A stretch of 64,000 nt of DNA from Stylophora pistillata (Eukaryota), in NCBI RefSeq assembly GCF_002571385.2, contig NW_019217955.1, positions 243,384 through 307,383 of the forward strand. Reading direction: 5' to 3'. Numbering within the stretch: position 1 is the first letter of the stretch; every line of letters starts with the position of its first letter. Below the pieces are notes generated by a model, which saw only the letters and a program-made list of their open reading frames with translations, was not told where the DNA came from and searched no databases. Below, piece by piece: positions 16,152 to 64,000 of this stretch. Made by a program: the position numbers and the translations under genes.

Positions 16152-19100
16152 ATGACGACAAAAATAGCAGTTAAGGACGCGGCTAAGCGACTGGGGAGAG
16201 TTTTGCTGAAGAACGAACCAAACTGGATTACTGGAGATTTAGGGAACTACGTGGACGATACACTCAAAAGCCAATTCCCTGCAGTGGCTTCGTGTGCAGC
16301 CCGCACGTGCGATGAGGTCAAAACTTTTAAGACTAAAGAAGAGCAAGGACCTGTTCAACAAAGCGACCTTTTAAAACCACTGTTGATGGATATCGCTCAA
16401 GAGGGCCTAAATTACGCTTTCCAAAAATGGATCCAGAAAAAGGAGAACCCTGAGAGGCATTCAAAGACGAAAAATCCGAAGAAAGTGATTGTGGTTGGAA
16501 CCGGAATGGCTGGGCTAGTGGCTGCATTTGAGCTGGCGCAAGTTGGACACGACGCGATAGTATTAGAAAGCCAGACGCGAGTAGGAGGCAGAGTTCACAC
16601 CCTTGGGGAAAAGGATGGTTTTGCAAAGGGACTCCACGGTGAGGGTAAGTATTGTGTACTGTAGTTGATTGATGGAGACCAACGTGGCTTTATTCTTCCT
16701 GTCTACTATATCCGTAATAACTGCTTTCGTAATCCTTTTGCATTTCTATTAATTTTATTTGCAGCTGGTGCCATGAGGTTACCATGTCTCCCTGACGCGA
16801 AGACCAAGACCCATTTCCTGACAGATTTTTATGCTTCTCAGAAGCGGTTCAATCTACCCTTGGCAGATTTTACCAACTATAGTGAAAAAGCTTTTCTCAA
16901 GTTTTATAACGAAGACGCTGTTCGTATAGAAGGTGAGCTTTATGATACATAAGTAAAATCTTCTGGTTAATGTTTGAAAGCGTCAAATGCCTTCCCTCGA
17001 GGTCAGATGTAGCTCAGGGTAGCCCTGCAGTTTAGCACGTTTATATCCCTGAGAGTGAAACTGAGTTTCAGAATTTGGGCTTGATGTTCTGAAGAGCAGT
17101 GGTCTGACCTCACAACACGACGCTGATTGGTAGATTTTTAAACGAAACAGTTACACTTACACCATTTAGTAGGTATGCAGCACAAAAACTGTTATATTTT
17201 GGAATGAAATGCTCACCATTTAAACACGTGGGTGAGGTAAGGCACCGAGAGAGGAAAGGGTCTTTATGACAATGTTCCCCTCTTAGTCAGGGGTAGTCCT
17301 GTGGTTAAGCAAGTCTATTTCGTTAAGAGTGAAATTCAGTTTCTAGAATTTGGGGCTCAATAAACTGAAGTGTAATGGCCTGGTTTAACAACAGGTCGCC
17401 CGCTTACAGCTAAAGGTAATTTCTAATTTGTGTATGCAACAGAATGGAATAAAGATCCGTTGACCTGGACGAACAAACTTTGGCTTGGATGGGATGCTAC
17501 CCTGAAAAAAACCGGAGTGAAGGACATCATGAGTATAGGTAAGATTAAAGGGCTGAAGCTGTCTAAGGTGGTTGTAAAGTTCATTTTTGCCATGCACCAT
17601 TAGTGTTGAGGCTATTCCTCAACAAGGTTTTATGTTTAGTCCGTTCCGTTCCTGATTTTTTTGTATGTCACGTTGACCACAATCCTTCAATAGTGATTTT
17701 AGTCGCTATCCTTTTTCGCACGTGGTGAGACGCTTGTAAAAGTTTAGGTACGTAAAACTGTTCCTTTTCTTTCGCTTACCGCCCGTCATCATGTGGTTTT
17801 TACGGCTCCCCGAGTCTCGTAATCTTTGATGGAAGGCGACCGGATCGTTTTGTAATTATTGGTATTCTTCGCCGTCATTAAACTCGTTGGTCGAAGCGCT
17901 GTTTTGTTATTATTCGACATCTTCGCCACTTTATGTGTCGGACCCGGATATTGTTGTAAGAAACAACATGTTTGTCATCGCTTCCTGCTGTGGAATTTGT
18001 GCCTATTTACGCTGTATATGACCTCAACTGGAGAATCGCCGTTTCATCAAAGAAAACCGCCGTTGTTCAATATTTGTGTCATGTCGCCACGTGGAATCAC
18101 AGGCGGCCCAGGCTCTGTCACAGGCTCTTTCGCAGTGGACCATTATAGAGTTTGTATGGTGGTTTAGTTGGACTTGCGTTTGAGCTCCGCAAATATAAAG
18201 TTGTGTGAAATAATCAAAGAAATAGTCTCACCTTCATACAGAGTAGTCTGTGCTGTTCCTGTCGCGATTTGAGGCCGTTTTGCTGTGTTTTAACTTCCTA
18301 CCACTACCAAATAAAAGGGGAGGTAGGAAAGCTCTGTCTCACACACGCTCGCCAAAATCGCTCGAAAAACACACTTCCATACTTCCCCTTGAATCGAAAC
18401 TTGGGAGCACGAAAGCCAAATAGTTACCGTTGGAGCGAGCTTTGGGTGTGTACCGGGATGCACAGTCTGGCATTTTCAAGTTTAAAGCTCTGCAGGCAGA
18501 AAAACCGTCCACCAAGCGAGGGGTGCTTTCGATCGTAAGTTCTTTGTTTGATCCACTAGGATTCCTTTCACCCTTTGTGTTTTCTGCCAAGCTTGTGCTG
18601 CAGGAACTCTGGAGAGATAAACTCCCTTGGGATCAGCAAGTTCCAGAACCTTACCTCTCACAATGGCAACGTTGGCTGGCTGAACTACCACATGTTATCG
18701 CCATTGATACCCCAAGGTGTTACAAGACTCAGTCATTTCACAACACATCGACTGTCCAGCTTCATAACTTTGACGACGCATCCAGACGCGGTTACGCACC
18801 AGTTTCATATTTGAGTTTCGTCAATGAAAAAATAGGGATTCATTGTTCCTTTGTCAAGAAAAAAACCCGCAATGCTCCCATTAGGGAGTGGACTATCCCT
18901 CGTCTTGAACTTCAAGCCGTAATATTAGCAGCCCGTCTGAGCAAGATAATATTGAAGGAACTCGATCTACCAGTAGATTAAACCTTCTTCTGGTCCGACT
19001 CAATGGCATCTTTACAGTACATCAAGAATGAAACAAGGCGTTTTCAAACCTTTGTCGCCAACAGTGCCACCGAAATCCTTGAAACAAGTCTTCTAGAGCA

Positions 19101-22100
19101 ATGGCATCAAATTCCCGGTGTCATAAACCCTGGTGATGATGATTCACGAGGTGTTAGTGCTCAATATTTTCACGTTGAATGTCGCTGGTGGTTAAGTCCA
19201 AAATTCCTTTGGGAACCTGAATGTGCGTGCCAAGTGTGCTAGTAAAGGATCTCCAAGATGACGACGTGGAACTACGGAAGTCACCAACTGTTATGCTCGT
19301 CTCACATGTACTGCAGATTGACACCTTGCTGCAGCGCTATTCATCGTGGTCCCACTTACTGAGAGTAATGTCGTGGGTGCTTCGTTTCGTAAAGAGAGTT
19401 CGAAATGAAACTCCAGAGTATCCTAAGTCAAGTACACTCAAGCTGGTAGAATTGCAGCAATCAAGTCGAGAAATTGTGCGGTTAGTTCAGCGAAGACATT
19501 TGCTAGAGGAGTACTTGTGTGTGAAAGAAGGCAGACAAGTGAAACGTCACAGCAAGTTACCTAATCTCAGTCCAATCTTGATTGACAATGTTATACGCGT
19601 GGGAGGTAGAATTCATCGCGCGCCAATCGCCTTTGAGGCCGCACACCCAATGATCCTTCCAAAGTACCTTCACGTTTCTGTGTTACTAGTTCGCTACTAC
19701 CACCATGTACTGGGCCATGCAGGCCGCGAACATGTATTATCCGTAATCCGTCAGCGTTTCTGGATCATGAGGGGAAGAGCTCTCGCACGCCGCGTTCGGG
19801 GTAGTTGTGTGAGCTGCCGCAGACGTAACTCGCATCCTCTTCAAGTTATGGCTGATCCTCCCAAAGAGAAGCTAGTACCTTACCAGCCTCCGTTCACATT
19901 CACAGGTCTGGATTTTTTCGGACCGTTTTACGTGAAGCGAGGTCGCAGTGCAGGGAAAGTGTATGGCTGCATATTCGTGTGCTTCAATAGCCGAACAGTA
20001 CATATTGAAGCTTTCGTTCGATTCATCTCAGTGCGTGATCGCCCAAAGGAGATATGGTCGGAAAATGGCACAAATTTTACTGGTGTTCAGAAGGAACTTC
20101 GCCTGTCGGTTCAAAATCTGAACGAAAAAACGGATCAGGAGTGACTTACATTCTCGTGAGGTAGAATGGTACAGCTGTAAACTACCAGAGTGGCGTTTTC
20201 AACCTCGTGCCGCAGGCCACATGTCAGGAGTTTGGGAAAGGCTCAGTAGAAGTGTTAGGAAAGTTATGAAGGCTGTTCTCGGTAGTCAGGGTGCGGTGGT
20301 TAGTTTGGAAACGTTGCGTACAGTATTTGCTGAAGTCACATCAATCTTGAACAGTCGTCCTATTTGTCCTTCCAGTGACGATCCAAGTGATTTATAGCCG
20401 CGAACTCCAAATAATCTTCTGCTACAATGCCGAAACCTATTTGTATCTGCTTGAGTTTTCGCTGAAAGGGACTTGTACTCCCGTAAACAATGGAGACACG
20501 CTCAGTTCATTGCTGATTGTTTCTGGTCTCGTTAATATCTAGAATATGTTCCAACATTACAGCAGCGCAACAAGGGGTTACTGAACAAACGGAACTTAGC
20601 AGTTACCGACGTGTTCCTTGTTGTGGACAATACCGTGCCCAGGTGCCACTGGTTGTTAGGTCGTGTAACAAGGGTTTTTCCGGGTGAAGACTTATGTGTA
20701 CGCACAGTAGAAGTGGAGACGAAGAGCTCGAGACTTGTTCGACCCGTGACGAAGTTGTGTCTTCTTGAAGAGGCAGTATAATAAACCAAGAGAAGATCTG
20801 AACGCTGTGAACATTGACCTACCAAAACATTGAACACTGAACACTTAGGTTGATTTCATATTTCTTAACTGTTAGCTTTTCTCAGCCCTATTCCCCAGGA
20901 TGTTGAGGCTATTCCTCCACAAGGTTTTATGTTTTAGTCCGGTCCGTTCCTCACTTTTTTCATTTGTCACGTAGACCACAATCTGTCAATAGTAATTTTA
21001 TTCGCTATCCTTTTCGGATGTGGTGAAACGCTTGTAAAAGTTTAGCTACGTAAAACTGTTCCTTATCTTTCGCTTACAGCCCTTCATCATGTGGTTTTTA
21101 CGACTCCCCAAGTCGCGTAATCTTTGATGAAAGGGTGACCGGATCGTTTTGTAAATATTGGTATTCTTCGCCGTCGTTAAACTCGTTGGTCGAAGCGCTG
21201 TTCTGTTATTATTCGACATCGCCGCTTCATGTGTCCGAGCCGGACAATTAGTGCATCAGCCACAGGAGGCGAAAAACTTCAAGCCCCTAAAATCCCCTTG
21301 GTACTATGGTATCCCTGACGTTTGTACACATCACTCCCAAAACACGTCTACCTTACGCTTAGCACACATTGGAATTCCACGAAATTTCGCAGCCCGGGAA
21401 AGAGCAAAAACGTGTGAAATATTAAATAGGAATTTACGGAGGGAAAAGTGTTCATAACTCAGGACGGTTAATGTGTCATGCTGGAAACCATCGGAATGAC
21501 AGACCGAAAATTTGAATTTGAATTGCCTTTGTTCGGCACCTAAAATACGACGCATTAAAGATAATTAAAAGAGAAAGATTTCTTCCTATGAAAGGAAAAA
21601 TACTATCCGATGTCTTTAGAACAGGCGGATTGACATAGTTGCAAAATTGATCTACTAGACTGAAAATGGCACAGTTTAAAATGTATTTTGAAATGGCTTT
21701 GTCGAAGGCCCATTTGATCGTATTCATATGCTGATTTGTGTCATAGAAATTATAACTATTATCATCATTGTCGTCTAGATGGTATGTTTTGACTGTAACT
21801 TTCTCTTTGTCCAATTGCAGATGAATATTATAATCGCACCACTCGGGTGGTAACAAATCAGCTGCTTTATTTGCTTAACGATCCCAGCGTTAAACCAAGT
21901 GATGCCTGGAATCAGTGGATTGATGTGTGGAGTCAGTTTCCACTCGATGGGTTCCTACAAAGTACTTACGAAGCAGTCAAGACAAATGTTGAGAAAAAAG
22001 TCCCCAGGGAAAAACACAGCATCTTTGTGACAAGCCTCAAAGAACTCAAGAAGTACCTTCCTTGGCCTGAAGCCGCCCTCACTGCCTACTCTGTCTTCAA

Positions 22101-23025
22101 TTATACACAGCAACTTGATCAAAGCCTGGTGCGATACCTCCGAGAACAACTGGGACAGTGGTGGTCACCAGACATGCACTGCATCAAAGGCGGGATGTCT
22201 TTGTTGCCAGAAGCCTTCACCCAAAAAGACAATGGAGGCTGGAATCCCGACGTTTCCCTTCACGATAAAATTCACTTTAACCGTACAGCCAATGAGATCA
22301 TCTACAAATTTTATGAAGGTGATACTGAAAATAATCATGTGGTGGTAAAAGGCTACTTCAGCAACAGCAGACAGCCTTTTGAGATCGAAGGAGATGCTGT
22401 TATAGTGGCAACTCCAATCAACATTCTTAGACAGATCAAGTATACGCCCTCAGAACACACCGAGCGTCCCCCACAGGATTTCTACAAGGCCATAGAAGAC
22501 ATCTATAGCGGTCCAGCAACCAAACTATTCATACAGACTAAGACCAGATTCTGGGAGAAAGACGGCATTAAAGGAGGCTTCTCAAAAACAGATCTTCCAA
22601 TCGGGCAGCTCCATTATTCAAGCAACGTCACTGGAGAGCATCCTGGAGAAAAAGGCATTCTGTTGGTTTATACGTGGAAGACAGAAGCCTTACTATTTGG
22701 CTCCCTGGATCCTACTACTGCTCTTCACGAGGCAGTAAAGCAAATAGCCACAATCCACCCAGAGATCAAGGACCAGGTTGAAACGGGAGCCGTCTGTGCA
22801 TGGTACAACCAACCAACAGCTCAGGGAGCCTATGCCCTGCTCAAACCCACCCAATACCAAAACGTCCGGTACCTCATGAAATACCCCATGGCTAACATCT
22901 TCTTTGCTGGTGAGGGTCTCTCGTTTGCTTCGGGATGGATTCAGGGGGCCTTGGAGTCTGGTCTACGAGCAGCTTATCAGTTTTACATTCGCAACGAGGG
23001 CGGATGGTGCCCCAAATTGAAATGA
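16152..23025 (+). CDS. Flavin-dependent L-amino-acid oxidase family protein, copy 1 (653 aa; exons 16152-16644, 16765-16932, 17443-17538, 21821-23025)
   Basis: Three phase-1 GT-AG introns give a 1962-nt open frame. Motifs: VVGTGMAGL (GxGxxG), [36 protein letters not shown]...[14 protein letters not shown]. Confidence 0.92.
17604..21246 (+). mobile_element. BEL/Pao LTR retrotransposon, internally deleted, in intron 3 of LAAO copy 1
   Basis: LTRs at 17604-17950 and 20901-21246; perfect TSD ATTAG. ORF pieces [58 protein letters not shown]. The site is empty in copies 2 and 3. Confidence 0.95.
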
Positions 23026-23976: not shown

Positions 23977-24020
<44 letters not shown>

Positions 24021-24074: not shown

Positions 24075-24110
<36 letters not shown>

Positions 24111-25560: not shown

Positions 25561-27300
25561 GTGGCTCGTACCGGTTTTCATCGTTTTGATGGTTTGTAAC
25601 TTTGAAAGAATACAACAGAAAGACTGACCAAGGCCAGTTGAACACTTTTATGGGGTTGAATTACATAATCATTGGTTATCCAAAAATAAGTGTTATTTCG
25701 TNNNNNNNNNNNNNNNNNNNNNNNNNNNNNNNNNNNNNNNNNNNNNNNNNNNNNNNNNNNNNNNNNNNNNNNNNNNNNNNNNNNNNNNNNNNNNNNNNNN
25801 NNNNNNNNNNNNNNNNNNNNNNNNNNNNNNNNNNNNNNNNNNNNNNNNNNNNNNNNNNNNNNNNNNNNNNNNNNNNNNNNNNNNNNNNNNNNNNNNNNNN
25901 NNNNNNNNNNNNNNNNNNNNNNNNNNNNNNNNNNNNNNNNNNNNNNNNNNNNNNNNNNNNNNNNNNNNNNNNNNNNNNNNNNNNNNNNNNNNNNNNNNNN
26001 NNNNNNNNNNNNNNNNNNNNNNNNNNNNNNNNNNNNNNNNNNNNNNNNNNNNNNNNNNNNNNNNNNNNNNNNNNNNNNNNNNNNNNNNNNNNNNNNNNNN
26101 NNNNNNNNNNNNNNNNNNNNNNNNNNNNNNNNNNNNNNNNNNNNNNNNNNNNNNNNNNNNNNNNNNNNNNNNNNNNNNNNNNNNNNNNNNNNNNNNNNNN
26201 NNNNNNNNNNNNNNNNNNNNNNNNNNNNNNNNNNNNNNNNNNNNNNNNNNNNNNNNNNNNNNNNNNNNNNNNNNNNNNNNNNNNNNNNNNNNNNNNNNNN
26301 NNNNNNNNNNNNNNNNNNNNNNNNNNNNNNNNNNNNNNNNNNNNNNNNNNNNNNNNNNNNNNNNNNNNNNNNNNNNNNNNNNNNNNNNNNNNNNNNNNNN
26401 NNNNNNNNNNNNNNNNNNNNNNNNTTTTTTTTCTGATGATTCCTTTCGACGTTATTATCATATTGGAACAATAAAAAGAAGGGGTCACCGGACTTGTTTT
26501 CATGCAATAGCTTTCGTGAGTTTAGCAATTTCCACGCGCGTTCTCGCGCATTTAAAAATCTGGATTCTATAAGATCGACATTTGCTCATGATCTGTTTTA
26601 GCTACCGCTGAAAATTGCGTGTGCTCGCGCGAGCACCTACGATCTGATGTTTACAGACGTTTACTGCTAAGAAAATCATTAAACGGCCGTCAAAGACAGC
26701 CTCCCGAGCTCATCTTAAAGACTTTAAGACCTTGACATCCATTTTTTTCCAAGGAGAGTATTCTACAGCACTGCTACTTTATATTCTGAATTCCACAAGG
26801 TCTAACTCGATCGCAAAGGAACGAAAAATCCGACTTGAAAATTTTGAACGTCGGCCGCGCGGACACCATATTTTCAAATTTGATCATTTAGCATGAACGC
26901 ACAGAATGATGCTCTTCTTGTACCCCTTAAAGCTATCAAAATATATGTGCAAATGACGGATTCTGATTGGTTTATTGATCTCCAAACTTTGAAGGAAGTT
27001 TGGGGACAAAATTCTGCATAGCGGGGGAGGCAGTGGGGAAAGCGTTCTCGCGCGAGCCAATCGCGCGGTTCGGGCGGTTTCGGGCGGTTAAAGCAAAACG
27101 AAAAATTTACTTTCGCGCTGCGGATTTGATCCAACCACTCCTTCGTAACAAGGAAAGTTACTATGATTGTGGCAGTACCGTGAGGCCATCTACGACATGA
27201 CCTACTAGACAGCAAAAGCCTAAAAGGATCGCAACCTTCTGATAATCTGAACTGCTTACCCTTATGTCCGAGCGTCCCATCCAGCGCATAAGCTTTTATA
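25561..27300. mobile_element. Probable TTAA-targeting (Kolobok-like) DNA element spanning an assembly gap
   Basis: Begins TTAA|GGTGGCTCG at a TTAA site inside a module copy. The right end was not identified, and 25702-26423 is N. Confidence 0.35.
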
Positions 27301-37500: not shown

Positions 37501-37560
37501 TCTGGTCTACGGGCAGCTTATCAGTTTTACATTCGCAACGAGGGCGGATGGTTCCCTTGA
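34544..37560 (+). CDS. Flavin-dependent L-amino-acid oxidase family protein, copy 2 (656 aa; exons 34544-35039, 35151-35318, 35668-35763, 36350-37560)
   Basis: Same internal exon sizes (168 and 96 nt) and phases as copy 1; 1971-nt open frame. [17 protein letters not shown] and [15 protein letters not shown] are intact. Confidence 0.93.
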
Positions 37561-45143: not shown

Positions 45144-45685
45144 ANNNNNNNNNNNNNNNNNNNNNNNNNNNNNNNNNNNNNNNNNNNNNNNNNNNNNNNN
45201 NNNNNNNNNNNNNNNNNNNNNNNNNNNNNNNNNNNNNNNNNNNNNNNNNNNNNNNNNNNNNNNNNNNNNNNNNNNNNNNNNNNNNNNNNNNNNNNNNNNN
45301 NNNNNNNNNNNNNNNNNNNNNNNNNNNNNNNNNNNNNNNNNNNNNNNNNNNNNNNNNNNNNNNNNNNNNNNNNNNNNNNNNNNNNNNNNNNNNNNNNNNN
45401 NNNNNNNNNNNNNNNNNNNNNNNNNNGAAGACAAGCTGAGGGTCGTAAACAAAGCCTGCGAGTTTCAACGCGAGCTTGATCAACGACCTTTCTTGTGGAG
45501 CTGATCCATTCATGGCATGAATAAAGTTGCTTGGCAATCATAGCTAGTAAGAAATGTTCCTGTGAATTTTGCCCTCGATTGTTAAATATTTGATATTTGG
45601 AAAGGGGCTTATTACAGGATGGTAATCATTAAGTAAACGAAATCACAAGTGATGTGCAGCTTTGAACTCTAACCTTTCATCTCTT

Positions 45686-49300: not shown

Positions 49301-51150
49301 ATAACATAACTAAAGCAAAGCGCGCGCTCTGATTGGTTAATTCAGTATCTACTATTTTCCCACGGGTGTATGCTGCTGACGCGTGTGCTAATGCTTCCAA
49401 AACAAATATTGACAGACATTGTTTCCAAAGTAATGACCGACGTGCCCTCAGCCAGAAATGTGAAACTGTCTTCACAGTGGTCTATTTGGGAGCATTTTTC
49501 CCGAGCCACCTGCAAAGAGATTCGCAAGTTTAAGCGAAAGCGCACTTGAAGAGCTTGTTAGTGAGCGACACTCAAAAAAGACGAAAGAAGTCACAAACTG
49601 GTCTATGTCACCATTTAAAAGTAAAAAAAAAGTTATTAAAGCTTAGTTGAAATTCATTAATAGGCTTTACGAGAAAGAGAAAACGAAATAAATATCTGAA
49701 CACCTATTAAATATTTAGAAATTGTTCCTGTGTAAACACAATTAAATGCTAACGCGTGGACAGTGTCGACGAAATTACATTTTCAATTTGCTGTTTTCGC
49801 GATTTTAAAAAGCGCTTACTCTGATAACAGATGAAAATGAATTGAAAGTTAAGTTCCATTTCAAACCATATTTGATAGTCCGTTTCTTTTTGTTATTTTC
49901 AGCTTGGTGTGCAGAAAAACAAATTCAAACCCCACTAGAAGCGATGAAAATAGGTCAGCTTGGTCAAAACCTACGCAGGTTTCACGCAGAAGCGGGAACT
50001 AAAAAGGGCGGAGATTACAGTTATTCGATAGAAAGACACCTTAATGCCTCACCACTTAGCAGAGGCTTACAAATTTCAACTGACACAAGTTTGCAAGATC
50101 AAACCTCATGCTAGATGCACAAATAAAAAAATCTAAAACGAAGCGGCAAAGAAAATGTCTCGCATAAACCTGCTATCGAGGAAGAAGACCTCCAGAAATT
50201 GAAATTAAGCGAAGTGTTGTCCTTGTCGTCACCGCTTTCCTTGCTGAGAAATGTTTGGTTTCATGTCGCCCTGTTTTTCTGTAGACGGAGACTTGAGGGG
50301 CAAAGAAGTTTGACAACGAACAGCTTCAACTTTGAAACCGATGCGGCTGGAAGAAATTACGCAACCATGAGTCACGATGAATTATCAAAGAATCATCCCG
50401 GAGGACTAAAGGACGTTGAAAGTACAGAAAAAGAGGCCAGAATGTATGAGACCGAAGACCAAGGTGACGGCTACATGGCACTCAGATTGTATCTCCAGAA
50501 GGTACATCCAAAGTGTACCACATTTTTCCAGTATCCGAAGAAAAATAACATGGCTCTAGACGCCGTTTGGTACGAAGCACGACCGCTTGGAATAAACCGC
50601 CTCGCCAAAATGGTGAAGACCATCAGCGAAGAAGCACGTTTATCCAAAATCTGCGCAAACCATTGTGTAAGAGCCACTGCCATCTCTCTCTGGTCCAACG
50701 CCAGGATTTCAAACCGCCACATCATGGCCATTTCTGGACACCGCAGTGAGCAGTCTCTTGTAAGCTGACAATTCGCGGCCTTCGACCTCACAGCTCCATA
50801 ACTGCAGCCCGAGAGCCTTTTCTCCTTCTGCCATCAATCACAGCCAACCATCAGAAACTTCTCAGCAATCCACCTCGTTCCAGACCAAACAAGTCACAAC
50901 GAAATCACTCTTCGGCGAATGCACTATTCAAAACGTGCAAATTGTTTTCAACGGTTCTGTCAACCTCTGAAATTCAGTCCATTTTTAAATGATTTTGGAT
51001 GGTTGTCAAATTTCTCCAGTTTGTTGATAATTCTGCTGAACTCTTTCACCAGTTGTTGGATACAGACCTTATAAAGAAGAATTTGAGTGATATTTCAGGA
51101 AACGTGATTAAACTTTATCGAGTTGCTGGTGTACAGTCGATTGTCATTAT
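49301..51150 (+). mobile_element. Crypton-type tyrosine-recombinase transposon relic
   Basis: ORF 50199-50768: WFHVALFFCRR..QR, NHPGG, WYEARPLGIN, NHCVRAT (H-x-x-R), ISGHRSEQSLVS* with a stop where the catalytic Tyr is expected. There is an apparent intron at ~49621-49902. Confidence 0.8.
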
Positions 51151-51169: not shown

Positions 51170-54100
51170 TCTTTGTATTATGCCAAGTTCTGATTACAAT
51201 AAACGACAGACGCCGCATTAAGCCACTGAAGCATCCTTTGTCATTCATTAAGTTCTGTAGAGAACATACATTGAATTGAATCCCAGGCCGCAAGCCCGCC
51301 CATGCAGCTTCGAGCCTCGTGTTTTTAAAAGTCGCTTGGGTTCCCATTTTGCTTGCTCAAATAAAACAGGATAAATAAGTGATGAGAAACTACAGGGCAA
51401 TCGAATCTTTTTTGGAGGAAAACGTCATCGAAGCGTAATTTCTTGACTAATCGAGAAAACAGTAATTTGTTTTGCGTTTTATCTGTCATACTATTGATAA
51501 CTAACGTTTTTTTCAAGTGCCATAGCAAAGTTAACGCAAAAAGCCTATTGGACCGCATTTGATTGGTGGCTACACACCATCAACCTTTCAAAATCAAACA
51601 AAAGTATTCATGGCTTTTTGACTTTCACTTTAAAACATTTTGCATTCTTCCTTGTTGCCTGATTGTACACGATCACAAACGGTAAGAATGTACAATATGA
51701 GATTGTTTTTCTACTAGCAATCAAAAAATCAATCCCCAAACGCCTAACAAGAAACATCTTTGACTCCTAATCACTAAATTTTGAAGCTTGACTCCGCATT
51801 ATTCCATTCACAGTTCATCCATACTACAGTTAATCGTGCAGGTGAGTTTAGAAGGAAACGGCATCAAAATAAACAATCATGGCTTGAAGTGATTCTGAAT
51901 TATACGACGTGGTAGTGGTCGGTGGTGGTCCCATGGGATTATCCACAGCATACCAATGCGCCGTTAAAGAAGAAAAGAAAGTAATGGTCATCGAGCCGTT
52001 TTTAATTTGGAAACACATATGGATCAAGTCCCGGGTTTGGTCGCCAATTTCGTATCTGCTACTCAGAGCGTTATCTGTGCCAACTGGCTATCAAGTCAAG
52101 TAAAGAATGGGATAAACTCATGCAAGAGTTGAAGAATAGCTCCCTTGTGGATCGAACAGGCTGCATTTGGTTTGGCGATGCTACCCGAATGCAGCGAGCC
52201 GCTATGTTCCAATAGTGGGTAGGTCCACCTTAGAGGAATAAACTTAGATGTCAAACAGACATCTTACCATACAAATCCAAATGCGAAATGATTCAGTGAA
52301 GAAATGTCGCAGTCAGGTTTTAATCAATGAGTGTACGTAGAGAATGACATTTTGGATTTTATTTCTAGTTACTCATATGTTTACTTCCCTTATATTATAC
52401 AGTCTTTCTACTGTCTAAAAAATAGAAATGTTCTCAATAAACGTCACACCAATTGAAAATGAATCTCAAAAACGCCCGTGGGAACGTGATTTAGCATTTG
52501 TGTTCTAAGAAATACCTGCGGCTACTATTGTTTCAATTGTTTGTAACTTTTCCCTAAAAGCTACTCCCAATCAAGATCATGGTGATCTTGCTGCGTTTCT
52601 AGTTAAGAAGGGCAATTCGTAAAATTCATTAGCAGTTGCTGTATTGTGAGAATGCATGTCACAGCTAATATTTCAATATACTATACCGTTTATTCATGCA
52701 TAGCTTATAACCCAAATTATCGTCAATGAATGAATGAATGATGAGGCCCTCCACCTTTGCAAGATATACAGATTGTCTTTCAAATCATGCAGAAACACCA
52801 CACCACAAAGTTTTTTATAGGAACGCTGATTTTTAAGCACACTTTTTCCAATTGTACTGCTAGTGATACTACTGTACGAAATTATAGTCAAATGTTATTC
52901 TGCCCGTTTAGTTTAACATTTCTTAAATAGATGATTCAGTATTTAGTAATCACAGGAGTGTCATTCCAATTATAATTCATTGTATCTATTTCTGTGGACA
53001 TTTGTTAATCTCTTAGTTTTGGTCTTATTCCCTCAGGTATTCCATTCCTAAGGTAAATTTTTTGAAGAAACGGAACACTTTCAAAAACGTTTTTGCGTTG
53101 TTGTATGACGCATCATGTAAGCTTCGAGTTAGGCTTTGTATTATGCCAAGTGTCGGATGAAAATAAACGACAGACACAACCCTACGCCCTTCAAATATCC
53201 TTTGTCATTCATGAAGTTATTTACAGAACAAAAATTGAACTGAAGCCGCGTTCGCAAGTCCACTAAGAAGCTTTAAGCCTCTCCTTGCTTAGAGTCGCTC
53301 GACTTTCCACCCTGCTTGCACAAATAAAACAGGATGGATAGATGATGAAAGAAATACAGGGTTACATCCTTAATTAGACGTAAACGTTATCGAGGCGTAG
53401 TTTCGTGACTGTTTGGAACAACCTCAATGTGTTTGCTCTTTTGCGATTTCAGATCTCACAATGATCATTTACGTAATTCAAGTGTCATAGCAACATATGC
53501 TCTGAATGCTTGTAGGAGACATTTGATTAACGCAATTTGCGAATTATGCCAAGTTCTGATTAATATATAAATGATAGACGCCACGCTAAGTCACTAAAGC
53601 ATCTTTTGTCATTCATGAAGTTATTTACAGAACAGAAATTGAATTTAGGGCGCGTTGGCAAGTCCGCCATGCAACTTTGAGCCTCACCTTGTTTAGAGTG
53701 GCTCGAGTGTCCACCGTGCTTGCAAAAATAACACAGGATAAGTAAGTAAGGAAAGAACCACAGGGTTACAGCCTTTATTGGACATAAAAATTATCGGAAC
53801 GTTTTTCTTGACTGATTGAGACAACCTCAATGTGTTTGCTCCTTTGCGGTTTCATCTCACAATGATCATTTACGTAATTCAAGTGTCATAGCAACTTATG
53901 CTCTGAATGCTTGTAGGAGGCATTTGATTGGTGGCTACTCACTTCTTGACCTGTCAAATTCAAACCAAAGTGATTATGGCTTTTTCAATTTCATGTTAAA
54001 GCTCCCTGCTTCTGTTGCAACCGATTGGATTTGGTAATTCAAAGAGAAGCTCTTGACTACCTTGCATCCAGCGGGATTGATGTTACAACCGGTAAGGACA

Positions 54101-55740: not shown

Positions 55741-55917
55741 ATTGTTTTTCTACTAGCAATCAAAAAATTAATCTCCAAACGCCTAACAAGAAACATCTTT
55801 GACTCCTAATCACTAAATTTTGAAGCATGACTCCCCATTATTCCATTCACAGTTCATCTATACTACAGTTAATCGTGCAGGTGAGTTTAGAAGGAAACGG
55901 CATCAAAATAAACAATC

Positions 55918-57297
55918 ATGGCTTCAAGTGTTTCTGAATTATACGACGTGGTAGTGGTCGGTGGTGGTCCCATGGGATTATCTGCAGCATACCAGTGCGC
56001 TGTAAAAGAAGGAAAGAAAGTAATGGTCATCGAGAAGTACAAATTTGGAAACGCATGTGGATCAAGTCCCGGGTTTGGTCGCCAATTTCGTATCTGCTAC
56101 TCAGAGCGTTATCTGTGCCAACTGGCTATCGAGTCAGGAAAAGAATGGGATAAACTCATGCAAGAGTTGAATGATAGCTCCCTTGTGGATCGAACAGGCT
56201 GTCTTTGGTTTGGCGATGCTACCGTCGAAAGCAGTGAGGGCAACATCGACAAGGCGGTACAGAACCTTAAAGAGCTGGGTGTAGGTGACTACGACTTACT
56301 TGAAGGCAAAGAAGCAATTCAGAGCGATGAGCGGTTTACCTTCATTTCGGATGCGGTGAACGACATCGATAAACCAAAAGCTCTCTATGTTGGTGATGGG
56401 GGTACCATAAATGTTCCTGCCGTTATCGAAGGCCTTTGCAAGATGCTGAAACGTTCAAGTACAGCTCAACTTGTGGAAAATGCGCCTACCAAATGCATTG
56501 ATTACAGCTTGGATGATGAGGTGAGAGTGTGGATCGATAAGCAGCCGTTTTGCATCCGGACCAAGAAAGTGATCCTGACGCCTGGAAGCTATATTAACGA
56601 CCTCTTATCAGCTCTAACACCCACCTTCACGGAAAGGATCAACCTCACGATCTATCTATGGAGCTCCACCTACTTCATTCCTTCTTGGCCTTCAGCTTCA
56701 AAGGAGAAGTGGCCTATCTGGTACTTCTTCGGTCAGCCGAACGAGAACAACCTAAATCTATACTACGGTTTCCCAAGCGAAAAGAAGCGGCCTGACTACG
56801 TCAGAGTTGCCCCAGCATTCACATCAAGCGAGCGATTTGACTTCAAGCTTTATCCACCAGACATTAGCGACAGACCACTTGATCAAGACGCCCTAAAGTT
56901 CACTGCTGACTTTGTGAAGAAATCAATGCCTTCTCTAGTCCCTCAACTATTAATAGAAGAGCAGTCAACATGCCTTGCTGGCTTTGCTGAATCCAGTGAT
57001 AGTGATGACGACGGTGTCGGTTTCGTTTTGGATTTTCTGCCAGACGCACGCAGCAATAATCGAATCCTTCTTTTTACAGGTGGATGGGGTATGAAGTTTG
57101 TACCTGTTATTGGAAAGGTACTTGCAGATTTGGCGATTAAAGGAACGACAGAGTACAGCAAACTCATTAAGCCATGGAATATCAACCGTGGTGTGCTCGT
57201 TAAAGAGAGAGGTAGCACCAACACGGCTCAGCAATCAGTAAAATGTACCCGATTGCAGCGAGCCACTATGTTCCAAAAGTGGGTAGGTCCACCTTAA
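55918..57297 (+). CDS. NikD-like covalent-FAD amino/imino-acid oxidase (monomeric sarcosine oxidase family), 459 aa, intronless CDS
   Basis: YDVVVVGGGPMGL, GSSPGFGRQFRICY, GCLWFGD..SEGNI, DGGTINV, NLYYGF, STCLA (Cys352, predicted 8alpha-S-cysteinyl FAD), GWGMKFVPVIGKVLADLA. Start context aatcATGG; AATAAA at 57301. Confidence 0.9.
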   Translation: MASSVSELYDVVVVGGGPMGLSAAYQCAVKEGKKVMVIEKYKFGNACGSSPGFGRQFRICYSERYLCQLAIESGKEWDKLMQELNDSSLVDRTGCLWFGDATVESSEGNIDKAVQNLKELGVGDYDLLEGKEAIQSDERFTFISDAVNDIDKPKALYVGDGGTINVPAVIEGLCKMLKRSSTAQLVENAPTKCIDYSLDDEVRVWIDKQPFCIRTKKVILTPGSYINDLLSALTPTFTERINLTIYLWSSTYFIPSWPSASKEKWPIWYFFGQPNENNLNLYYGFPSEKKRPDYVRVAPAFTSSERFDFKLYPPDISDRPLDQDALKFTADFVKKSMPSLVPQLLIEEQSTCLAGFAESSDSDDDGVGFVLDFLPDARSNNRILLFTGGWGMKFVPVIGKVLADLAIKGTTEYSKLIKPWNINRGVLVKERGSTNTAQQSVKCTRLQRATMFQKWVGPP

Positions 57298-57914
57298 AGG
57301 AATAAACTTAGAGGTCAAACAGACTTTTTGCCAAACAATTCCAAACGCGAAATGAGGTAGTGAAGAAACGTCCTAGTTTTAATCAATGAGTGTACGTTGA
57401 GAATGACATTTTGGATTTTATTTCTAGCTACTTATATGTTTACTTCCCTTATATCATACAGTCTTTCTACTGTCTGAAACTAGTAATGTTCTCAGTAAAC
57501 GTCGCACCAGTTGAAAATGAATCACAAAAACGCCGGTGGGACCATGAATTAGCATTTTTGTTCTGAGAAATACCTGAAACTATAGTTGTTTTAAATTGTT
57601 TTGTACCTTTTCCCTAAGCCCCCCCCCCCCAGTCTAGATAATGGTGATTTTGATGGGTTTCTAATTAAGAAGGGCGTTTTGCAAAAGTTATTAGCAGTTG
57701 CTGATTTTGTATTGTGAGGATGCATATCACAGCCAATGTTCCAATATACTATACCGTTTACTCATACATAAAACGTTGCCCAAATTATAGCCAATAAATG
57801 AATGGTGAAGCCCTCTACTTATGCAAGACATTCAGATTGTCTTTCAAATCATGCAGAAACACCACACCACAAAGTTTTATATTGGAACGCTGATTTTTAA
57901 GCACACTTTTCTAA

Positions 57915-58860
57915 TAGTCCTCGTCTAATTCTATCCTAGGGAGACTACAGTATTCCTTTTTCGGATTTCCTCTCTTTTGCCTTTGACCATATCCTATGGT
58001 CTGTGTCTTAATGGAGATTTGTCTGAGAGTAACACTGCTAGACAAAATGTTATTCCGACCGTTTATTTAAACTTTCTTCCTATAGACTGCATTTTGTAAT
58101 TAGGGGAGTGTTATTCTAGTTCATTGTTTTTCGTTTACATTGTGAAGTGTTCGTCTGGTATTCCATCTGAATCACTTTCTGGAGTAGCTTTTTCTAAGAA
58201 ATGAAGGACTTATCTTAAAAGACTTATTAGTGCAGTTGTATGATATGTTTGATAGGCTTTATTCTGGAGCGTTCGTGATAGTAGCGCGCTTCACGGTTCA
58301 AAAATTTAAGTGGCACCTATGGCCCAAGCATCATAACAACTCTTCCCGTAAACGCCTTGAGGAGGCATTTGATCCGTAGCTACTCACTTCTCCACCCGTC
58401 AAAATCGATCCAAAGTGATTATGGCTTTTTCAATTTGACATGATCATACCTTCCTGCTTTCATTGCAACAGTTTGGATTTCGTTATTCCAGAAATGAAAT
58501 GGTTGATTGGTTCATGCAGCTCCTATTCTTCTTCGTTCATGAAGTTCTTTACAGAACAGAAGTATAATTAAAGCTCGGGTCGCAAGTCCGCCATGCCGCT
58601 TTGAGCCTCACCCTGTTTAGAGTCCCTCGAGTTTCCACCGTACTTGTCCAATTAAAACAGGATAAATAGGTAAGTGAAAGAACTACGGTGTTACAACCTT
58701 AATTAAAAGTTATCATTGTCAGGACGTAGTCTCATGACTTTTTAAGACAACCTTAATGTGTTTACTCCTTTGCGTTTTCATCTCTCACAAGGATTAGCTA
58801 CGTAATTGGCAGTCTGCATCACCCAGAGCAAAGGTTAAAAATTTGGAGGTATATTATTCA
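57915..58860. repeat. Module copy upstream of LAAO copy 3
   Basis: Contains cctcgtctaatt, ggagactaca, ggggagtg and aaaacaggataaat blocks. It ends in ttggcagtctgcatca...aaaggttaaaaattt, as upstream of copy 2. Confidence 0.85.
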
Positions 58861-58867
58861 GTCAGCA

Positions 58868-58985
58868 CAAAATGCAGACTGCACACTGGGTAAAAAATGC
58901 AGACTAGGTAATAAATGCAGGCTGCGGACTTGGTACAAAATGCAATCCAGAGACGAAATGCAGATTACAGATGCAGTCTCAAAAT
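58868..58985. repeat. Short tandem repeats of AAAATGCAGACT (paralog at ~34058-34115)
   Basis: Several imperfect aaaatgcagact units at equivalent positions upstream of LAAO copies 2 and 3. Confidence 0.75.
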
Positions 58986-59091
58986 CCAGTCTCAGCATTG
59001 AAACTGTTTTTTTCTCGTCCGAACATGATAACATGTTGGTGAACTTATAAGCATCACAAAAACAAAATGCACAATTAAAGTTAAGGGCTCT

Positions 59092-59395
59092 TGTGGAGGC
59101 GCGGTGGCCTCATGGTTAGTGCACTCGACTCCGCATCGAGTGGTCTGGTTTCGACTCCTTGCTGAGGATATTGTGTTGTGTTCTTGGGCAAGACACTTTA
59201 CTCTCACAGAACCTCTCTTCAAGCCGGATAATAAATGAGTACCGGAGAATTTAATGCTGGGTGTAACGTTGCGATGGACTTGCATTCCATCCAGGGGGAA
59301 GTAGAAATACTCCTATTCACTTCATGCTACGGAAATCGGAGTTAAGCACCGGCCCGATGGGCTACTAGGCTCGTGAGCAGGCTTTACCTACCTCT
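59092..59395 (+). mobile_element. tRNA-derived SINE
   Basis: Head ggaggcgcggtggcctcatggttagtgc, central gtgttcttgggcaagacactttactctcac, tail ctttacctacct. It is absent at the paralogous site (gggctct|caaaacagac) near 34208. Confidence 0.85.
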
Positions 59396-59825
59396 ACTTC
59401 TCAAAACAGACAAATATGCATGGTTTAATTTTAACTGTTACCATACTCCTTGGAAACCCTCGAAACAAATCCAGTCATTCGGGTCTAGGATGCTGCAGCC
59501 GTAAAAAAAAAAAAAAAAAAAAAANNNNNNNNNNNAGAATAAAGGTCTTAGTACCATTCTGAGTTGGAATAACTGCAGCCGGAATTATTATAAAAAATTG
59601 TGAACGAATATAGCAGAACTAAGTCTTCCGCATTTACTCTGCACTACAAAGACACAAAATCTAAGAGACCTTGAGATCTACACTTTTGTGGCTAAAATAT
59701 GATTTCGATCAACATTTTTTACCACTAAGGTTTAAAATTAAGCAGCTAATTGTTTGTCCTGTTTTAAGATAACCCTATTGAGACCCTTATACAGTCTCTT
59801 TGATATCTTCAGCTGAGAATTCACG

Positions 59826-61278
59826 ATGACGACAAAGACAGTTCAGGACGTCGGTAAGCGATTGGGTAGGTTTTTGCTAAAGAACGAACCAAATTGGATT
59901 ACTGGAGATCTAGGGAAAAGCCCCTTCCCTACAAAGGCTAAGTATGAAGCCCACAGAAAAGGTCAAACGGTCGATGTTGTCAAAACGTCTAAGATTAAAG
60001 GAGAGCAAGGACCTGTTCAACAAAGCGATCTTTTAAAACCACTGTTGATGGATATTGCTAGAAACGGCCTAAATTACGCTTTCCAAACATGGGATCAGAA
60101 AGAAGAACCCGAGTGCTGTTCAAAGACGAAAAATCCGAAGAAAGTGATTGTGGTAGGAGCCGGAATGGCTGGGTTAGTGGCTGCATTTGAGCTGGCGCAA
60201 GTTGGACACGACGTGATAGTATTAGAAGGCCAGACGCGGATAGGAGGTAGAGTATACACCCTTGGGGAAAAAGATGGCTTTGAAAAAGGACTCCACGCTG
60301 AGGGTAAGTACTGTAGTGTATTGGCGGAGACCAACGTGGCTCTATTCTCCTCATAAGCTATCTGTAATGATTGGTTTCGTAATCCTTTTGCATTTCTATT
60401 AATTGCAATTGCAGCTGGTGCCATGAGGTTACCATGTCTCCCTGACGCGAAAACCAAGACCCATTTTCTGACGGATTTTTATGTTTCTGGGGAGCGGTTC
60501 AACCTACCCTTGGCACGTTTTGCCAATTACAGTGAGAAGGCTTTTCTCAAGTTTTATAACGAAGAAGCTGTCCGTATAGAAGGTGAGCTCTATGATACAT
60601 TGATGAAATCTACTACTTAATTTTTCAACGCGTCAAATGTCTTCCCTCGAAGTCAGATGTCGCCTTTCCGAACCCAAGGTAGCCCTGTAGCTTAGCATGT
60701 TATCTTTGTGTGAGTGAAACTGAGTTTTAGAATTTGGGCTTCAAGAGCTGAATTGCAGTGGCCTGACCTTACAACACGACGCTGACTTGTATTTACATCT
60801 TTTAATACGTTTATGGTGAAAAATGTTACATTTTGGAATGAAATACCCTTACCTAGTTCCCAATTCATGTATTTAGCCATTAACACACTTGAGCGAGAAA
60901 AGGCGCTGAAAGAGGTAAGGGTCTTTATGACAATGTTCCCGTGTCAAAAGCCTTCCCGAGAAATCGGATATAGCCCTCCTCCTTCAGGGGTAGTCCTGTA
61001 GTTTAGCAAGTTGATTTCTGTGATTAAGTGTAATATTGAGTTTTAGAATTTGGGGCTCGATAAAAACTGAAGTGTAGTGGCCTGGCCTTACAACTAGTCG
61101 CTTACTGAGAGCTAAACTTGTGTAAATTATGTAAATGTAAAATATGTAATAAAAGGTAATTCCCAATTCTTTTATATAACAGATTGGAGTAAAGATCAGT
61201 TGAAATGGATGAACAAACTTTGGCCTAAATGGAATGAAACCCTAATAAAAAATGGACTTTACGACATCGCAAATATCG
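59826..61278 (+). CDS. Flavin-dependent L-amino-acid oxidase family protein, copy 3, partial (exons 59826-60303, 60415-60582, 61183-61278; exon 4 expected beyond the window)
   Basis: Same exon structure and phases, with an open frame through three exons ([25 protein letters not shown]). Intron 3 homology resumes at 63961. Confidence 0.85.
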
Positions 61279-61964
61279 GTAAGTTTAACTGCTTTAGCTG
61301 TCTGAGCTGGTCGAAAACTTTATTTTTGCCATTCATCATTAGTATATTCTACAGCCACAGGAAGTTAAAAATTTTCAAGCCACTAAAATCCCCTTGATAC
61401 TATGATCTCCCTGAGTGTTGCACAGCACTCTCAAAGCACGTCTTCCTTACACACATCGGAATCCCACGAAATTTCGCCGCCCAAGAGCTGAAAGGAGGTG
61501 TGAAATACAAAATAGAATCGCATCATCGAATAAAAAGTCGCATTCTGATTGGTTTACGAAGCGAGGTATTTAGCGTGGAATTGCGAGTAATACATAACAA
61601 TAATAGTGAATGCTGTTTTCTTTTTGTTCTTATTTCTATTTAATTGTGCGATTCAAGGAAAATCCATTACTTGACTGTGAATTCCGCGTTGAATTGCACT
61701 TGAAAACCGATATTGTACTCATCGCTTCGCGATTTGTGCGATATCAGTTTTCGTGTCCAATTTAAGGCGGAATTCCCTCGTAAAGTAATGAATGTTTCTA
61801 TAGAATTTACGAGGGGAAAAGTGTACAAAAGTCAGGATAGTTACTGTGTTATGCCGAAAACCATCGGAGTGACTGACTGAAAATGGGAGTTTTAATTGCC
61901 TCTGAAAGTGTAGTCTGATCGTCCGGGTGAGTGTAGTCCTGAGAAGGACTGTTGTCGGTAGTAG

Positions 61965-62009
61965 TGACTAACGTTTCGACAACCTGTGCGGAAGTCATCA
62001 TCAGAGTCA
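61965..62009 (-). ncRNA. Minimal type I hammerhead ribozyme (Penelope-associated)
   Basis: Minus strand TGACT-CTGATGA-tgac-ttccgcacaggtt-gtc-GAAAC-GTT-AGTCA: stem I TGACT/AGTCA, intact CUGAUGA and GAAA cores, NUH triplet GUU. Confidence 0.8.
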
Positions 62010-62516
62010 AGTGAACAGTTGTTGTCAATAGAATGCTCATAGTCCAGTTCGTGTAAAATGATTGGTCAGTTTTGTCGTGATGTTATTGGCTGTAAGACTC
62101 AAGTGGCGTGAGTCGGTCGTGATTGGTCTGTTTCGATTCATCGGTAAAGTTAGGTCGTTCTGTTCGGTTCGTTTGTAATGTTAATGTCGTGAATGAGTCG
62201 TTTGTATGGAGCCGGTAGTAGTTGACACCTGTTTAGGGGAGTCTCTTTTAAGTTAGTGAACCAGCTTTCCAGAGTCAGTCGTAGTTAGTATTGTAGGTTA
62301 GGAATTGCGCAGAGTACCAGTCAATATTGTGGTTCGTAAGTCAATGATGTTCAGCAATGTGATTGCTGACATCACCTTTCCTCGTCGCCCGTCTGTGTTC
62401 AGTCAGTCTTGTTGCGAGGTTTCTACCAGTCTCACCAATGTAGGAGGCTTGGCAATCGGAGCAGTTGATCTTATAAATCACTTCCTGTCTGTTCCTCGTT
62501 TCGTCCTTGTCTTTAA

Positions 62517-63069
62517 AGTGCTACTGCGACGAAATGTTTTCTGGTGTTAACTTCGCAATTAAACCCTAAACTATAGGAATAAGCGTAAGTTTCTCAAATT
62601 TGACAACGTTATTCCTTGAAAACAGCGCCGCGAAGACATTAAAAATTCTTCCGCCAGCCCGCGAAAATAATCACAGCGGTTTTAGTTATGACGTCATCGA
62701 CTCACTTCGACAACGTCGCGAAGGCATGCCTTTACAAGAAATACGCAAAAGAAAGCTGGGGAACAATTATTTCGAATTTTATTCCTTCTTTCTTGCGGAA
62801 CCAGAAAAAAATCCTCTCTCGGCATACCAAATTAGCCACGTTTGTTGAGTCGTTGACGTCACTTCCGTTCTCGACCGAATTTCTTCTTCATCGCGCGGAG
62901 TTCTGTAGTTCGAAGAATTGCGGCCGTTTAGATCGCGAATCTACTGGGAAAATAATATTACTTCTCGATGGAGTTTTGCATTAAGATAAGTTAAATTTGT
63001 TACTTAGGGTGAAAGAAAAGGTGCATTTTTAGAGAAAAGAAAAGGTGCATTTTTGGCCGCAGTAGCCCT
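62517..63069. mobile_element. Non-autonomous TTAA-TSD DNA transposon (Kolobok-like) nested in the Penelope element
   Basis: TIRs AG(T/G)GCTACTGCG..(a)AAATG; TTAA at 62513-16 and 63070-73. Confidence 0.85.
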
Positions 63070-64000
63070 TTAACGTTGGCTAGTAACTGACGTAGTGTGG
63101 TTATGGGTTTTCGGGAGACGCGGATATTGAAGGGTTGTAAGATGCGCGAGATGTTCTCAGACATGCCTTTTATGTACGGTATGGTTGCTGTAGTCGTAGG
63201 AGTTGCGGTGTCGTTTGTTTCGGTAGTAGTAGTGGGTCGGTCAGTGTTTCGTCGGATGAAGTGGTCGTTGTAGTTGATCTTTGAAAAAACACGGTAAAAG
63301 AATTTGTTCTCGTCGGATAAGCTTTTTGTCGTGTTGCATACTAGTTGCTCGCATCGTGTTAGAGTTTTGATAGTTGTGACTTTGTGTGATGTAGGGTTGT
63401 AGGATGACTCGTCTAGTAATCTGTCGGTGTGTGTCGGTTTCCTCTAAACTGTTGTCCGTAGCGAGTTGTCGTCATGGCTTACCAGACAGTCTAGAAAAGG
63501 AAGTTGCCATTTTCTTCGACTTCTCTGGTAAACTGTATGTCAGTGTTTGCCCGTTGAGGTGGGGTAAATGCGTCGATTTCGTCGTGTCCTAGGGCGGTGA
63601 ATGTACCGTCAACGTAGCGTAACCAAAGCGGTATCGTGTGTGGGCAAGTCGAAAGGGCCCGTTCCTCGATGTTCTGCATCACAATTTCTACCACAACAAC
63701 AGAAACCTGAGACCCCATGGCTGTGCCGTGTAACTGTTTGTAGTGTTTATCGTTGTACTGAAAGTAAGTTGACGTTAGGCAAAGGTTCAGTAAGTCCGCA
63801 ATGTCGTCTGTCGGTAGCGTTAGTGGGTCGGTAGATTGTCGGAGTGCAGTTTCAGTACATTGTAGTGCCAATTGAAGTGGAATACTTGTAAACAACGATT
63901 TCACATCAAATGACAGTATTTTGTAGTCGTCAGGCATCATTTACTGCACTAATAGCCTCTATTCGGCACCTAAAATGCACCGCATCTAAAAATAATTTAA

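Follow-up and report, generated by a model that had tools for sequence, protein, structure and literature searches.

The DNA analysed here, called the window in the following, is a stretch of 64,000 nucleotides from the coral Stylophora pistillata (positions 243384-307383 of scaffold NW_019217955.1, referred to as C172, in a genome assembly of 398 Mb). Three genes for L-amino acid oxidases (LAAOs), one intact gene for an oxidase of the NikD type, its pseudogene and a two-exon stub of an SLC6 transporter gene lie on its + strand. This inventory was proposed in a first-pass annotation made from the sequence alone and was confirmed by open reading frame (ORF), Pfam and tblastn searches. The annotation had seen no other host genes in about 48 kb, and the remaining ORFs revealed by ORF and Pfam scans are indeed transposon-derived (a BEL/Pao element, reverse-transcriptase fragments and a DUF3504 ORF). 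Exons were placed by tblastn of the homologous proteins P0283 and P0275 and by RNA contigs. The genes are as follows.

16152..23025, + strand: LAAO-1, ~653 aa, with exons 16152-~16644, ~16763-16931, 17430-17537 and 21820-23025, placed by homology to P0283
34547..37560, + strand: LAAO-2, ~655 aa, with 34547-35317 (two exons, short intron), 35655-35771 and 36343-37560, placed by tblastn of P0275
41481..42464, + strand: SLC6 transporter relic, exons 1-2 only (41481-41591 and 42276-42377), recovered by tblastx with three of the coral's own SLC6 genes
51592..52846, + strand: NikD-like pseudogene, 5' and 3' parts kept, ~1 kb lost internally, with stop codons
55852..57918, + strand: NikD-like oxidase gene, uninterrupted coding sequence 55918-57297 (459 aa), splice acceptor AG at 55850-55851
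58472..64000, + strand: LAAO-3, cut by the window end, with 58472/58492-~58669 (5' untranslated region), 59811-60302, 60414-60580 and 61181-61278, from a spliced RNA contig and tblastn

Each of the three LAAO genes has four coding exons, with a Rossmann motif (GxGxxG, FAD-binding) in the first exons and matches to the Pfam Amino_oxidase family in the last ones (1.4e-38 and 2.3e-37). By tblastn the last exon of LAAO-1 is 100% identical to the NCBI protein P0283, which is annotated as L-amino acid oxidase-like [Stylophora pistillata]. LAAO-2 corresponds to P0275, which a Logan contig of 2.8 kb encodes as a spliced product of 655 aa; its last exon is 98% identical, and the first-exon identity is consistent with read-through of the short intron. 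LAAO-3 has its ATG at 59826 and an open last exon at window-equivalent 64234-65457 (locus L004), and thus ends 1.4 kb beyond the window. When the scaffold was followed outwards, as the first-pass annotation had recommended, the array was found to continue. Matches to the LAAO last exon occur nowhere in the genome but on the + strand of this scaffold, between 226 and 362 kb. They form seven loci; the last exon is open in four of these, and the other three are fragmentary or broken. The ratio of nonsynonymous to synonymous substitution rates (dN/dS) between the last exons of the paralogues is 0.33-0.46.

The NikD-like gene is present as a single intact copy in the genome and is thus nested in the genome's only array of that LAAO subfamily. 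Between LAAO-2 and LAAO-3 lie the SLC6 stub, the DUF3504 ORF, the NikD-like pseudogene and the intact NikD-like ORF. The pseudogene aligns by blastn with the intact gene over 0.6 kb at its 5' end (51592-52198 against 55631-56238, 94.6%) and 0.67 kb at its 3' end (52178-52846 against 57243-57910, 84.8%); the genome search matches it to amino acids 1-102 of the NikD-like protein, with TGA/TAA stops.

The intact gene is transcribed. Its sequence is found in polyA RNA-seq contigs of two studies, which are unbroken over 55852-57918. Though the coding sequence has no intron the gene is spliced, as the contigs begin at the acceptor and are joined there to a 5' leader. Correctly spliced LAAO-3 mRNA (contig up to 3139 nt, GT..AG introns) is present in the same four polyA libraries. 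The co-expression suggested for checking by the first-pass annotation is thus seen as co-detection, which is not proof of co-regulation, since contigs give no expression levels.

The SLC6 relic matches Pfam SNF at positions 37-89 (E 4.8e-13), with a profile coverage of ~1-89 only. Further exons for a complete coding region of 12 transmembrane segments were searched for and not found, and the genome-wide PF00209 search lists no match on this scaffold, the stub having been recovered by tblastx. LAAO-4 is followed by another SLC6 5' stub (359815-360919 of the scaffold, locus L013), which shares its upstream sequence with the stub in the window. LAAO-4 with its stub is 92-94% identical to LAAO-2 with its stub, gene and stub having been duplicated as a unit. 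Because the stub was copied together with an LAAO unit, we regard it as a passenger fragment, and the earlier idea of a transporter once linked to the module is weak. Another repeat inside the array, 4.1 kb long, joins window-equivalent 73797-77940 with 108946-113089 at 99.3% identity, which points to a duplication of very recent date or perhaps to one made by the assembly.

The NikD-like oxidase and its relatives in animals

NikC and NikD act in nikkomycin biosynthesis in Streptomyces tendae (PDB 2OLN, 2Q6U), and NikD is the best match of the intact coral oxidase in sequence as well as in fold. A phmmer search of the PDB with the 459-aa protein gave NikD with 5.9e-41 (144 bits) versus 3.9e-14 (55 bits) for monomeric sarcosine oxidase (MSOX), and the protein stays far under the cut-offs of the NCBIfam models MTOX and soxA. 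The AlphaFold2 (AF2) model has a pLDDT of 89.4 and a pTM of 0.89. With this model the top four Foldseek matches are all NikD (TM 0.84-0.90), above MSOX. Judged by sequence and predicted fold, the coral oxidase is a member of the NikD clade of the MSOX flavoprotein family. It is ~60 aa longer than NikD and ends in a poorly predicted C-terminal tail.

The coral residues R58, E107, Y283, C352, W390 and K393 correspond to R53, E101, Y258, C321, W355 and K358 of NikD. In NikD, Cys321 presumably carries the flavin adenine dinucleotide (FAD) in a covalent 8-alpha-S-cysteinyl linkage, and Trp355 lies over the flavin; Arg53 and Lys358 we take to be carboxylate binders, and Glu101, Tyr258 and Asp276 to be part of the active site. 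The coral protein thus keeps the covalent-FAD cysteine together with Trp355, Glu101, Tyr258, Arg53 and Lys358. C352 lies in the motif STCLA, aligns with Cys321 and is invariant in alignment A1. All six residues are present in 17 of 17 proteins of the animal clade, and the equivalents of R53, E101, Y258, W355 and K358 also occur in nearly all oxidase-coupled relatives.

In the oxidase-domain tree the proteins of sponge, octocorals and hexacorals form one clade with a support of 100. Its closest neighbours are proteins in which a NikD-like domain is fused to an amine oxidase (AO), and it is also their AO halves that resemble the coral LAAO most. Judged by equal scaffold lengths, a NikD-like and an LAAO homologue lie together on one scaffold in eight other cnidarian-type assemblies, two of them from the octocorals Dendronephthya (4.41 Mb) and Xenia (9.62 Mb); the other shared scaffolds measure 117 kb, 221 kb, 418 kb, 874 kb, 2.77 Mb and 3.15 Mb. 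Of the synteny that the first-pass annotation had proposed across cnidarian genomes, a shared scaffold of the two oxidases is indicated, while the SLC6 link is weak and the methyltransferase loci discussed below are unlinked in Stylophora. Among the matches listed for the NikD-like protein no named mollusc or crustacean homologue is present, so the route may be restricted to some lineages.

Pairing of the two enzyme types in bacteria and protists

A HMMER scan of 1.8 billion cluster representatives was made, and the best 150 proteins were examined, 26 of them long (767-1253 aa). At least 21 of the 26 long proteins fuse a NikD-like DAO domain with a PF01593 Amino_oxidase domain, and both orders of the domains occur. 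Fusions were found in Dictyostelium (DDB_G0291301), the choanoflagellate Diaphanoeca grandis, Diplonema japonicum, the rotifer Didymodactylos carnosus and a metagenome-assembled genome of Thermoanaerobaculia. One of the fusions, P0135, matches NikD with 2.7e-65 and canonical LAAOs with 3e-103. The amine oxidase and NikD-like fusions of the bdelloid rotifer (P0153 and P0414, 919 and 977 aa) represent a bilaterian occurrence of the module.

The Dictyostelium protein is annotated as putative bifunctional amine oxidase DDB_G0291301 (Q54EW2), and in the literature that mentions it no function is reported. As in the coral, a NikD-like DAO and a PF01593 oxidase are combined, there on one chain of 1080 aa, whereas the coral genes are clustered rather than fused; the Dictyostelium protein also falls in another branch of the NikD-like tree. 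The LAAO/NikD-like pairing would explain this orphan fusion, which is found from bacteria to Dictyostelium.

In Bacteroidota the pairing takes the form of an operon. Among 80 loci, which were found with the Bacteroidota subset alignment A2, a PF01593 oxidase of 586 aa lies directly downstream of the NikD-like gene on the same strand in 78. The partner in Flavobacterium supellecticarium (locus L025) is nearly identical to the FAD dependent L-Lys oxidase of PDB 7EIH/7EII (1117 bits). Biochemically this partner family is a specific L-lysine alpha-oxidase with the order of preference L-Lys > 5-OH-Lys > L-Arg > L-Orn, and CaLLysO from Chryseobacterium angstadtii is its natural representative (PMC8405998). 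The C. angstadtii locus (L031) is among the 80 and has the same arrangement. The paper on CaLLysO and AncLLysO (PDB 7EIH-7EIJ) is silent on the NikD-like neighbour and on a physiological role (PMC8405998). The pairing would provide a physiological context for these L-lysine oxidases, which were previously studied only as biocatalysts. The coral LAAOs resemble them as flavin amine oxidases that would likewise form the precursor of delta1-piperideine-2-carboxylate (P2C) from L-lysine next to a NikD-like enzyme, but they belong to a different LAAO subfamily. Directly upstream of the NikD-like gene, Bacteroidota operons contain an ORF of ~300 aa with no Pfam match (L025 6866-9863, L093 9008-9940), and an extracytoplasmic function (ECF)-type sigma factor is also encoded nearby in L025.

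Another type of partner was found in a Pedinophyceae green alga and in Shewanella, where an ELFV (Phe/Leu-dehydrogenase-type) amino-acid dehydrogenase is fused to the oxidase. In Streptomyces this first place is held by NikC, an aminotransferase (PMC4021061). One oxidase family is thus combined with three unrelated alpha-deaminating enzymes, which points to a shared alpha-imino or alpha-keto acid intermediate; for the assayed partner this intermediate would be lysine-derived, that is, P2C. Taken as comparative sequence evidence, the fusions and operons strongly support a functional coupling of LAAO-type and NikD-type enzymes.

It could be argued that the linkage in the coral has no functional meaning and that a horizontally acquired oxidase of the sarcosine or pipecolate type landed by chance in an LAAO array. 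The coding sequence is intronless, bacterial and metagenomic proteins are among the closest relatives outside animals, and the region is rich in transposons and segmental duplications. However, the pairing recurs as fusions in both orders and in the bacterial operons, the animal clade is monophyletic, the NikD-like gene yields a polyadenylated mRNA with a spliced 5' leader, and in the eight other assemblies both genes are on one scaffold. A chance linkage is already disfavoured by these observations, and we consider it highly improbable.

A candidate route from lysine to picolinate

We propose that the window contains the core of a coral metabolic gene cluster, in which an array of LAAOs surrounds one NikD-type oxidase and which would convert lysine via P2C to picolinate. 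To this reading, which is based on homology and gene arrangement, we assign a probability of roughly 0.6. It is the best reading in view of the fusions, the Bacteroidota operons with an L-lysine alpha-oxidase family and the NikD residues that were kept. The LAAO, a flavin enzyme that depends on O2 and releases H2O2, would act first on L-lysine. Its product 2-oxo-6-aminohexanoate would cyclise spontaneously to P2C, and the NikD-like enzyme with its covalent FAD would then perform the four-electron aromatisation of P2C to picolinate, whereby two more H2O2 are released. The proposed sequence from L-Lys over P2C to picolinate is that of NikC and NikD (PMC4021061). In contrast to the coral LAAO, NikC is a pyridoxal phosphate-dependent aminotransferase, the host here is an animal, and neither a picolinate-CoA ligase nor peptide-assembly genes are found nearby.

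The first-pass annotation had suggested that an LAAO replaces NikC in a two-step route to picolinate. The partnership of the two enzyme types is borne out by the fusions, the operons, the L-lysine alpha-oxidase partner family and the NikD residues. Comparative genomics and one published enzyme activity together lend good support to the view that an LAAO takes the place of NikC before a NikD-type oxidase. What the sequences suggest is the chemistry of NikD behind another first enzyme, a combination kept from bacteria to early-branching animals. For the coral itself we infer that the LAAOs use lysine, that the product is picolinate and, more speculatively, that an unlinked methyltransferase then N-methylates it to homarine. 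The coral genes are concrete, clonable candidates for the formation of the picolinate ring, and if the proposal is true they represent a rare conserved metabolic gene cluster in an animal.

Animals also reach picolinic acid by the kynurenine/ACMSD route, in which tryptophan is the starting compound, the enzymes are unrelated and the ring closes non-enzymatically. The coral route would share with it the end product. This established route had been overlooked in the first-pass annotation, where animal genes for picolinate-ring synthesis were said to be lacking.

Several observations weigh against the proposed route. The coral LAAOs belong to the snake-venom/IL4I1-like subfamily and not to that of the proven bacterial L-Lys oxidases. 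Their best PDB matches are snake-venom-type LAAOs (3e-39), and they score about equally against venom LAAOs (138 bits) and the best fused partner (159 bits). Trichoderma LysOX is distant (E 4e-20, C-terminal part only), and among the Bacteroidota L-lysine oxidases 7 of the 80 loci reach E 1e-5, at 24-27% identity. Asp276 of NikD is replaced by Ala300 in the coral, and the animal clade has Ala (13) or Gly (4) at this position, while 9 of 13 DAO-AO fusions retain the Asp. For the eight other assemblies, the equal parent-scaffold sizes place the two genes on one scaffold but say nothing of their distance. A signal peptide or peroxisomal signal is not seen on the LAAO or the NikD-like protein when inspected by eye only, which is unusual for H2O2-producing enzymes; the coral LAAOs look cytosolic. 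A predicted complex of LAAO-2 (residues 100-655) and the NikD-like protein (1-430) received a score of 0.00, which counts neither for nor against direct binding.

Some of these points would also fit two coupled enzymes with another substrate or product. The LAAO could act on ornithine, arginine or another amino acid, and the NikD-like enzyme could yield an imino acid of another kind, heteroaromatic or unsaturated, or halt once two electrons have been removed; pyrrole-2-carboxylate from delta1-pyrroline-2-carboxylate might be an example. Besides the distance of the coral LAAO subfamily from proven L-Lys oxidases and the replaced Asp276, the weak turnover of Arg and Orn by the bacterial enzyme (PMC8405998) speaks for such a variant. 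So does the clade of oxidases fused to ELFV dehydrogenases and methyltransferases, which has Arg for Trp355, is as near to MSOX as to NikD and thus indicates that the chemistry varies within the wider oxidase family. On the other hand, six of seven ligand or flavin residues of NikD are kept in the coral, including Trp355 and Glu101. The single assayed partner oxidase prefers L-lysine, with a kcat/Km more than 15-fold over L-Orn (PMC8405998), and lysine is alone among the standard amino acids in giving the six-membered P2C that NikD aromatises (PMC4021061). Another substrate or product therefore appears unlikely to us, if well worth keeping in mind.

Alternatively, the array may serve mainly as a generator of H2O2 in defence or immunity. 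The LAAOs would then yield peroxide and reactive imino acids, the NikD-like enzyme would only add peroxide or clear P2C, and picolinate would be a by-product. Animal LAAOs are often antimicrobial; the escapin of the sea hare and the LAAOs of fish mucus are lysine-specific, secreted defence enzymes, and their lysine product equilibrates with P2C. The coral enzymes can be likened to them as members of the animal LAAO family, and to our knowledge escapin and the fish mucus LAAOs have no NikD-type partner. Tandem expansion, pseudogenes and the moderately relaxed constraint seen in the dN/dS values are a pattern common in defence genes, and by established NikD and LAAO chemistry three H2O2 would be formed per lysine. 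Against this, the by-eye inspection revealed a signal peptide on none of the copies, and both protists and free-living bacteria of the soil retain the pair, as a fusion or an operon, which favours a metabolite product over an animal-specific defence. We therefore regard a primary role in defence as improbable and retain the route from lysine to picolinate.

Homarine, the 5' leader and the surrounding elements

Homarine ranks among the most abundant of marine nitrogen osmolytes and signalling molecules. Its content is reported to be high in Hydractinia larvae, where it inhibits metamorphosis (PMC12225738), and in gorgonians it is reported as an antifouling compound (PMC5880021). No report on genes for homarine synthesis was found in the papers searched, and a study of 2021 stated the lack of genetic information (PMC8269247). 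Of the homarine pathways it is only the bacterial catabolism that is solved, in 2026 (PMC13236597).

We also looked for a methyltransferase. As already noted in the first-pass annotation there is none in the window, and the same holds for the ORFs of at least 100 aa over 203-387 kb of the scaffold. Elsewhere in the genome, and unlinked to this scaffold, Methyltransf_7 exons occur at no fewer than five loci, which lie at C256:116-157 kb (three in tandem), C1879:9-10 kb and C10:1074-1075 kb (L019-L024). They are 40-48% identical to the SABATH (Methyltransf_7) domains which are added to the oxidase in two fusions, P0220 and the 1170-aa protein P0247 of Shewanella surugensis (dehydrogenase-oxidase-methyltransferase). 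The SABATH family includes the plant trigonelline synthase, and most of its members are O-methyltransferases. The oxidases that carry a methyltransferase sit on a long branch of their own in the tree. They are equally close to MSOX and NikD, and in them Arg takes the place of Trp355. The trifunctional Shewanella protein had been considered as a homarine synthase and was down-weighted on account of these features. The methyltransferase fusions are a lead towards homarine, not support for it.

On sequence grounds homarine is thus a possible but doubtful end product in the coral. Tentatively, the LAAO, the NikD-like oxidase and an unlinked SABATH enzyme may form a homarine route in cnidarians and sponges, with the DAO-AO fusions and the Shewanella surugensis protein as one-chain picolinate or homarine synthases in protists and marine bacteria.

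An identical 5' leader (GACTGGAGTTACAACC...) starts the RNA contigs of the NikD-like gene (at 55852) and of LAAO-3 (at 58472/58492). Its exact source is absent from the window and from the genome at up to 2-3 mismatches, so that neither a shared first exon nor trans-splicing is established. Diverged copies of the leader with a GTAAGG donor precede several members of the array, at 9046, 40280, 44375 and 54082, and the leader possibly derives from a shared first exon, from paralogous leader exons or from trans-splicing. In three runs the NikD-like contigs follow the reference only up to 57918, a position without a GT donor, and the homology to the pseudogene stops near 57910; this break may reflect a structural difference or an insertion in the reference. 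The remaining features of the window are the following.

17856..21460, + strand: BEL/Pao long terminal repeat (LTR) retrotransposon in LAAO-1 intron 3 (Peptidase_A17 E 2.8e-42, Integrase_H2C2)
25702..26424, no strand: assembly gap, intergenic between LAAO-1 and LAAO-2, with no abutting coding match
45145..45426, no strand: assembly gap in repeat and transposon debris, the flanking ORFs being fragments repeated elsewhere in the region
50127..50768, + strand: DUF3504 ORF, probably transposon-derived (Pfam DUF3504 E 1.2e-10)
54040..54100, + strand: diverged 5' leader copy with a GTAAGG donor behind it, from fuzzy matching of the RNA leader; not the leader's exact source
59525..59535, no strand: assembly gap in LAAO-3 intron 1, bridged by RNA contigs (58657 joined to 59811) and covered by one contig over 59283-59841

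None of the three assembly gaps touches a coding exon. One ORF flanking the gap at 45145-45426 looks by eye like the N-terminus of a reverse transcriptase. The BEL/Pao element has LTR-like repeats near 17859 and 21158 and near-identical ORFs at both ends. A further LTR retroelement lies on the - strand upstream of the LAAO and NikD-like genes (1995-5930 of the window), with a 522-aa ORF at 4359-5927 that matches zinc knuckle and aspartyl-protease domains and a 376-aa integrase ORF at 1995-3122 (rve, Integrase_H2C2).

Beyond the window, a 273-aa ORF on the - strand of L004 (7073-7891, window-equivalent 71073-71891) contains domain 2 of the Baculovirus FP protein (E 6e-12) and is presumably a piece of a mobile or viral-derived element. 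Directly downstream of the LAAO array, at 364837-383189 of the scaffold (L013-L015), three intronless ORFs encode rhodopsin-type G protein-coupled receptors (7tm_1, E 1e-35 to 1e-40).

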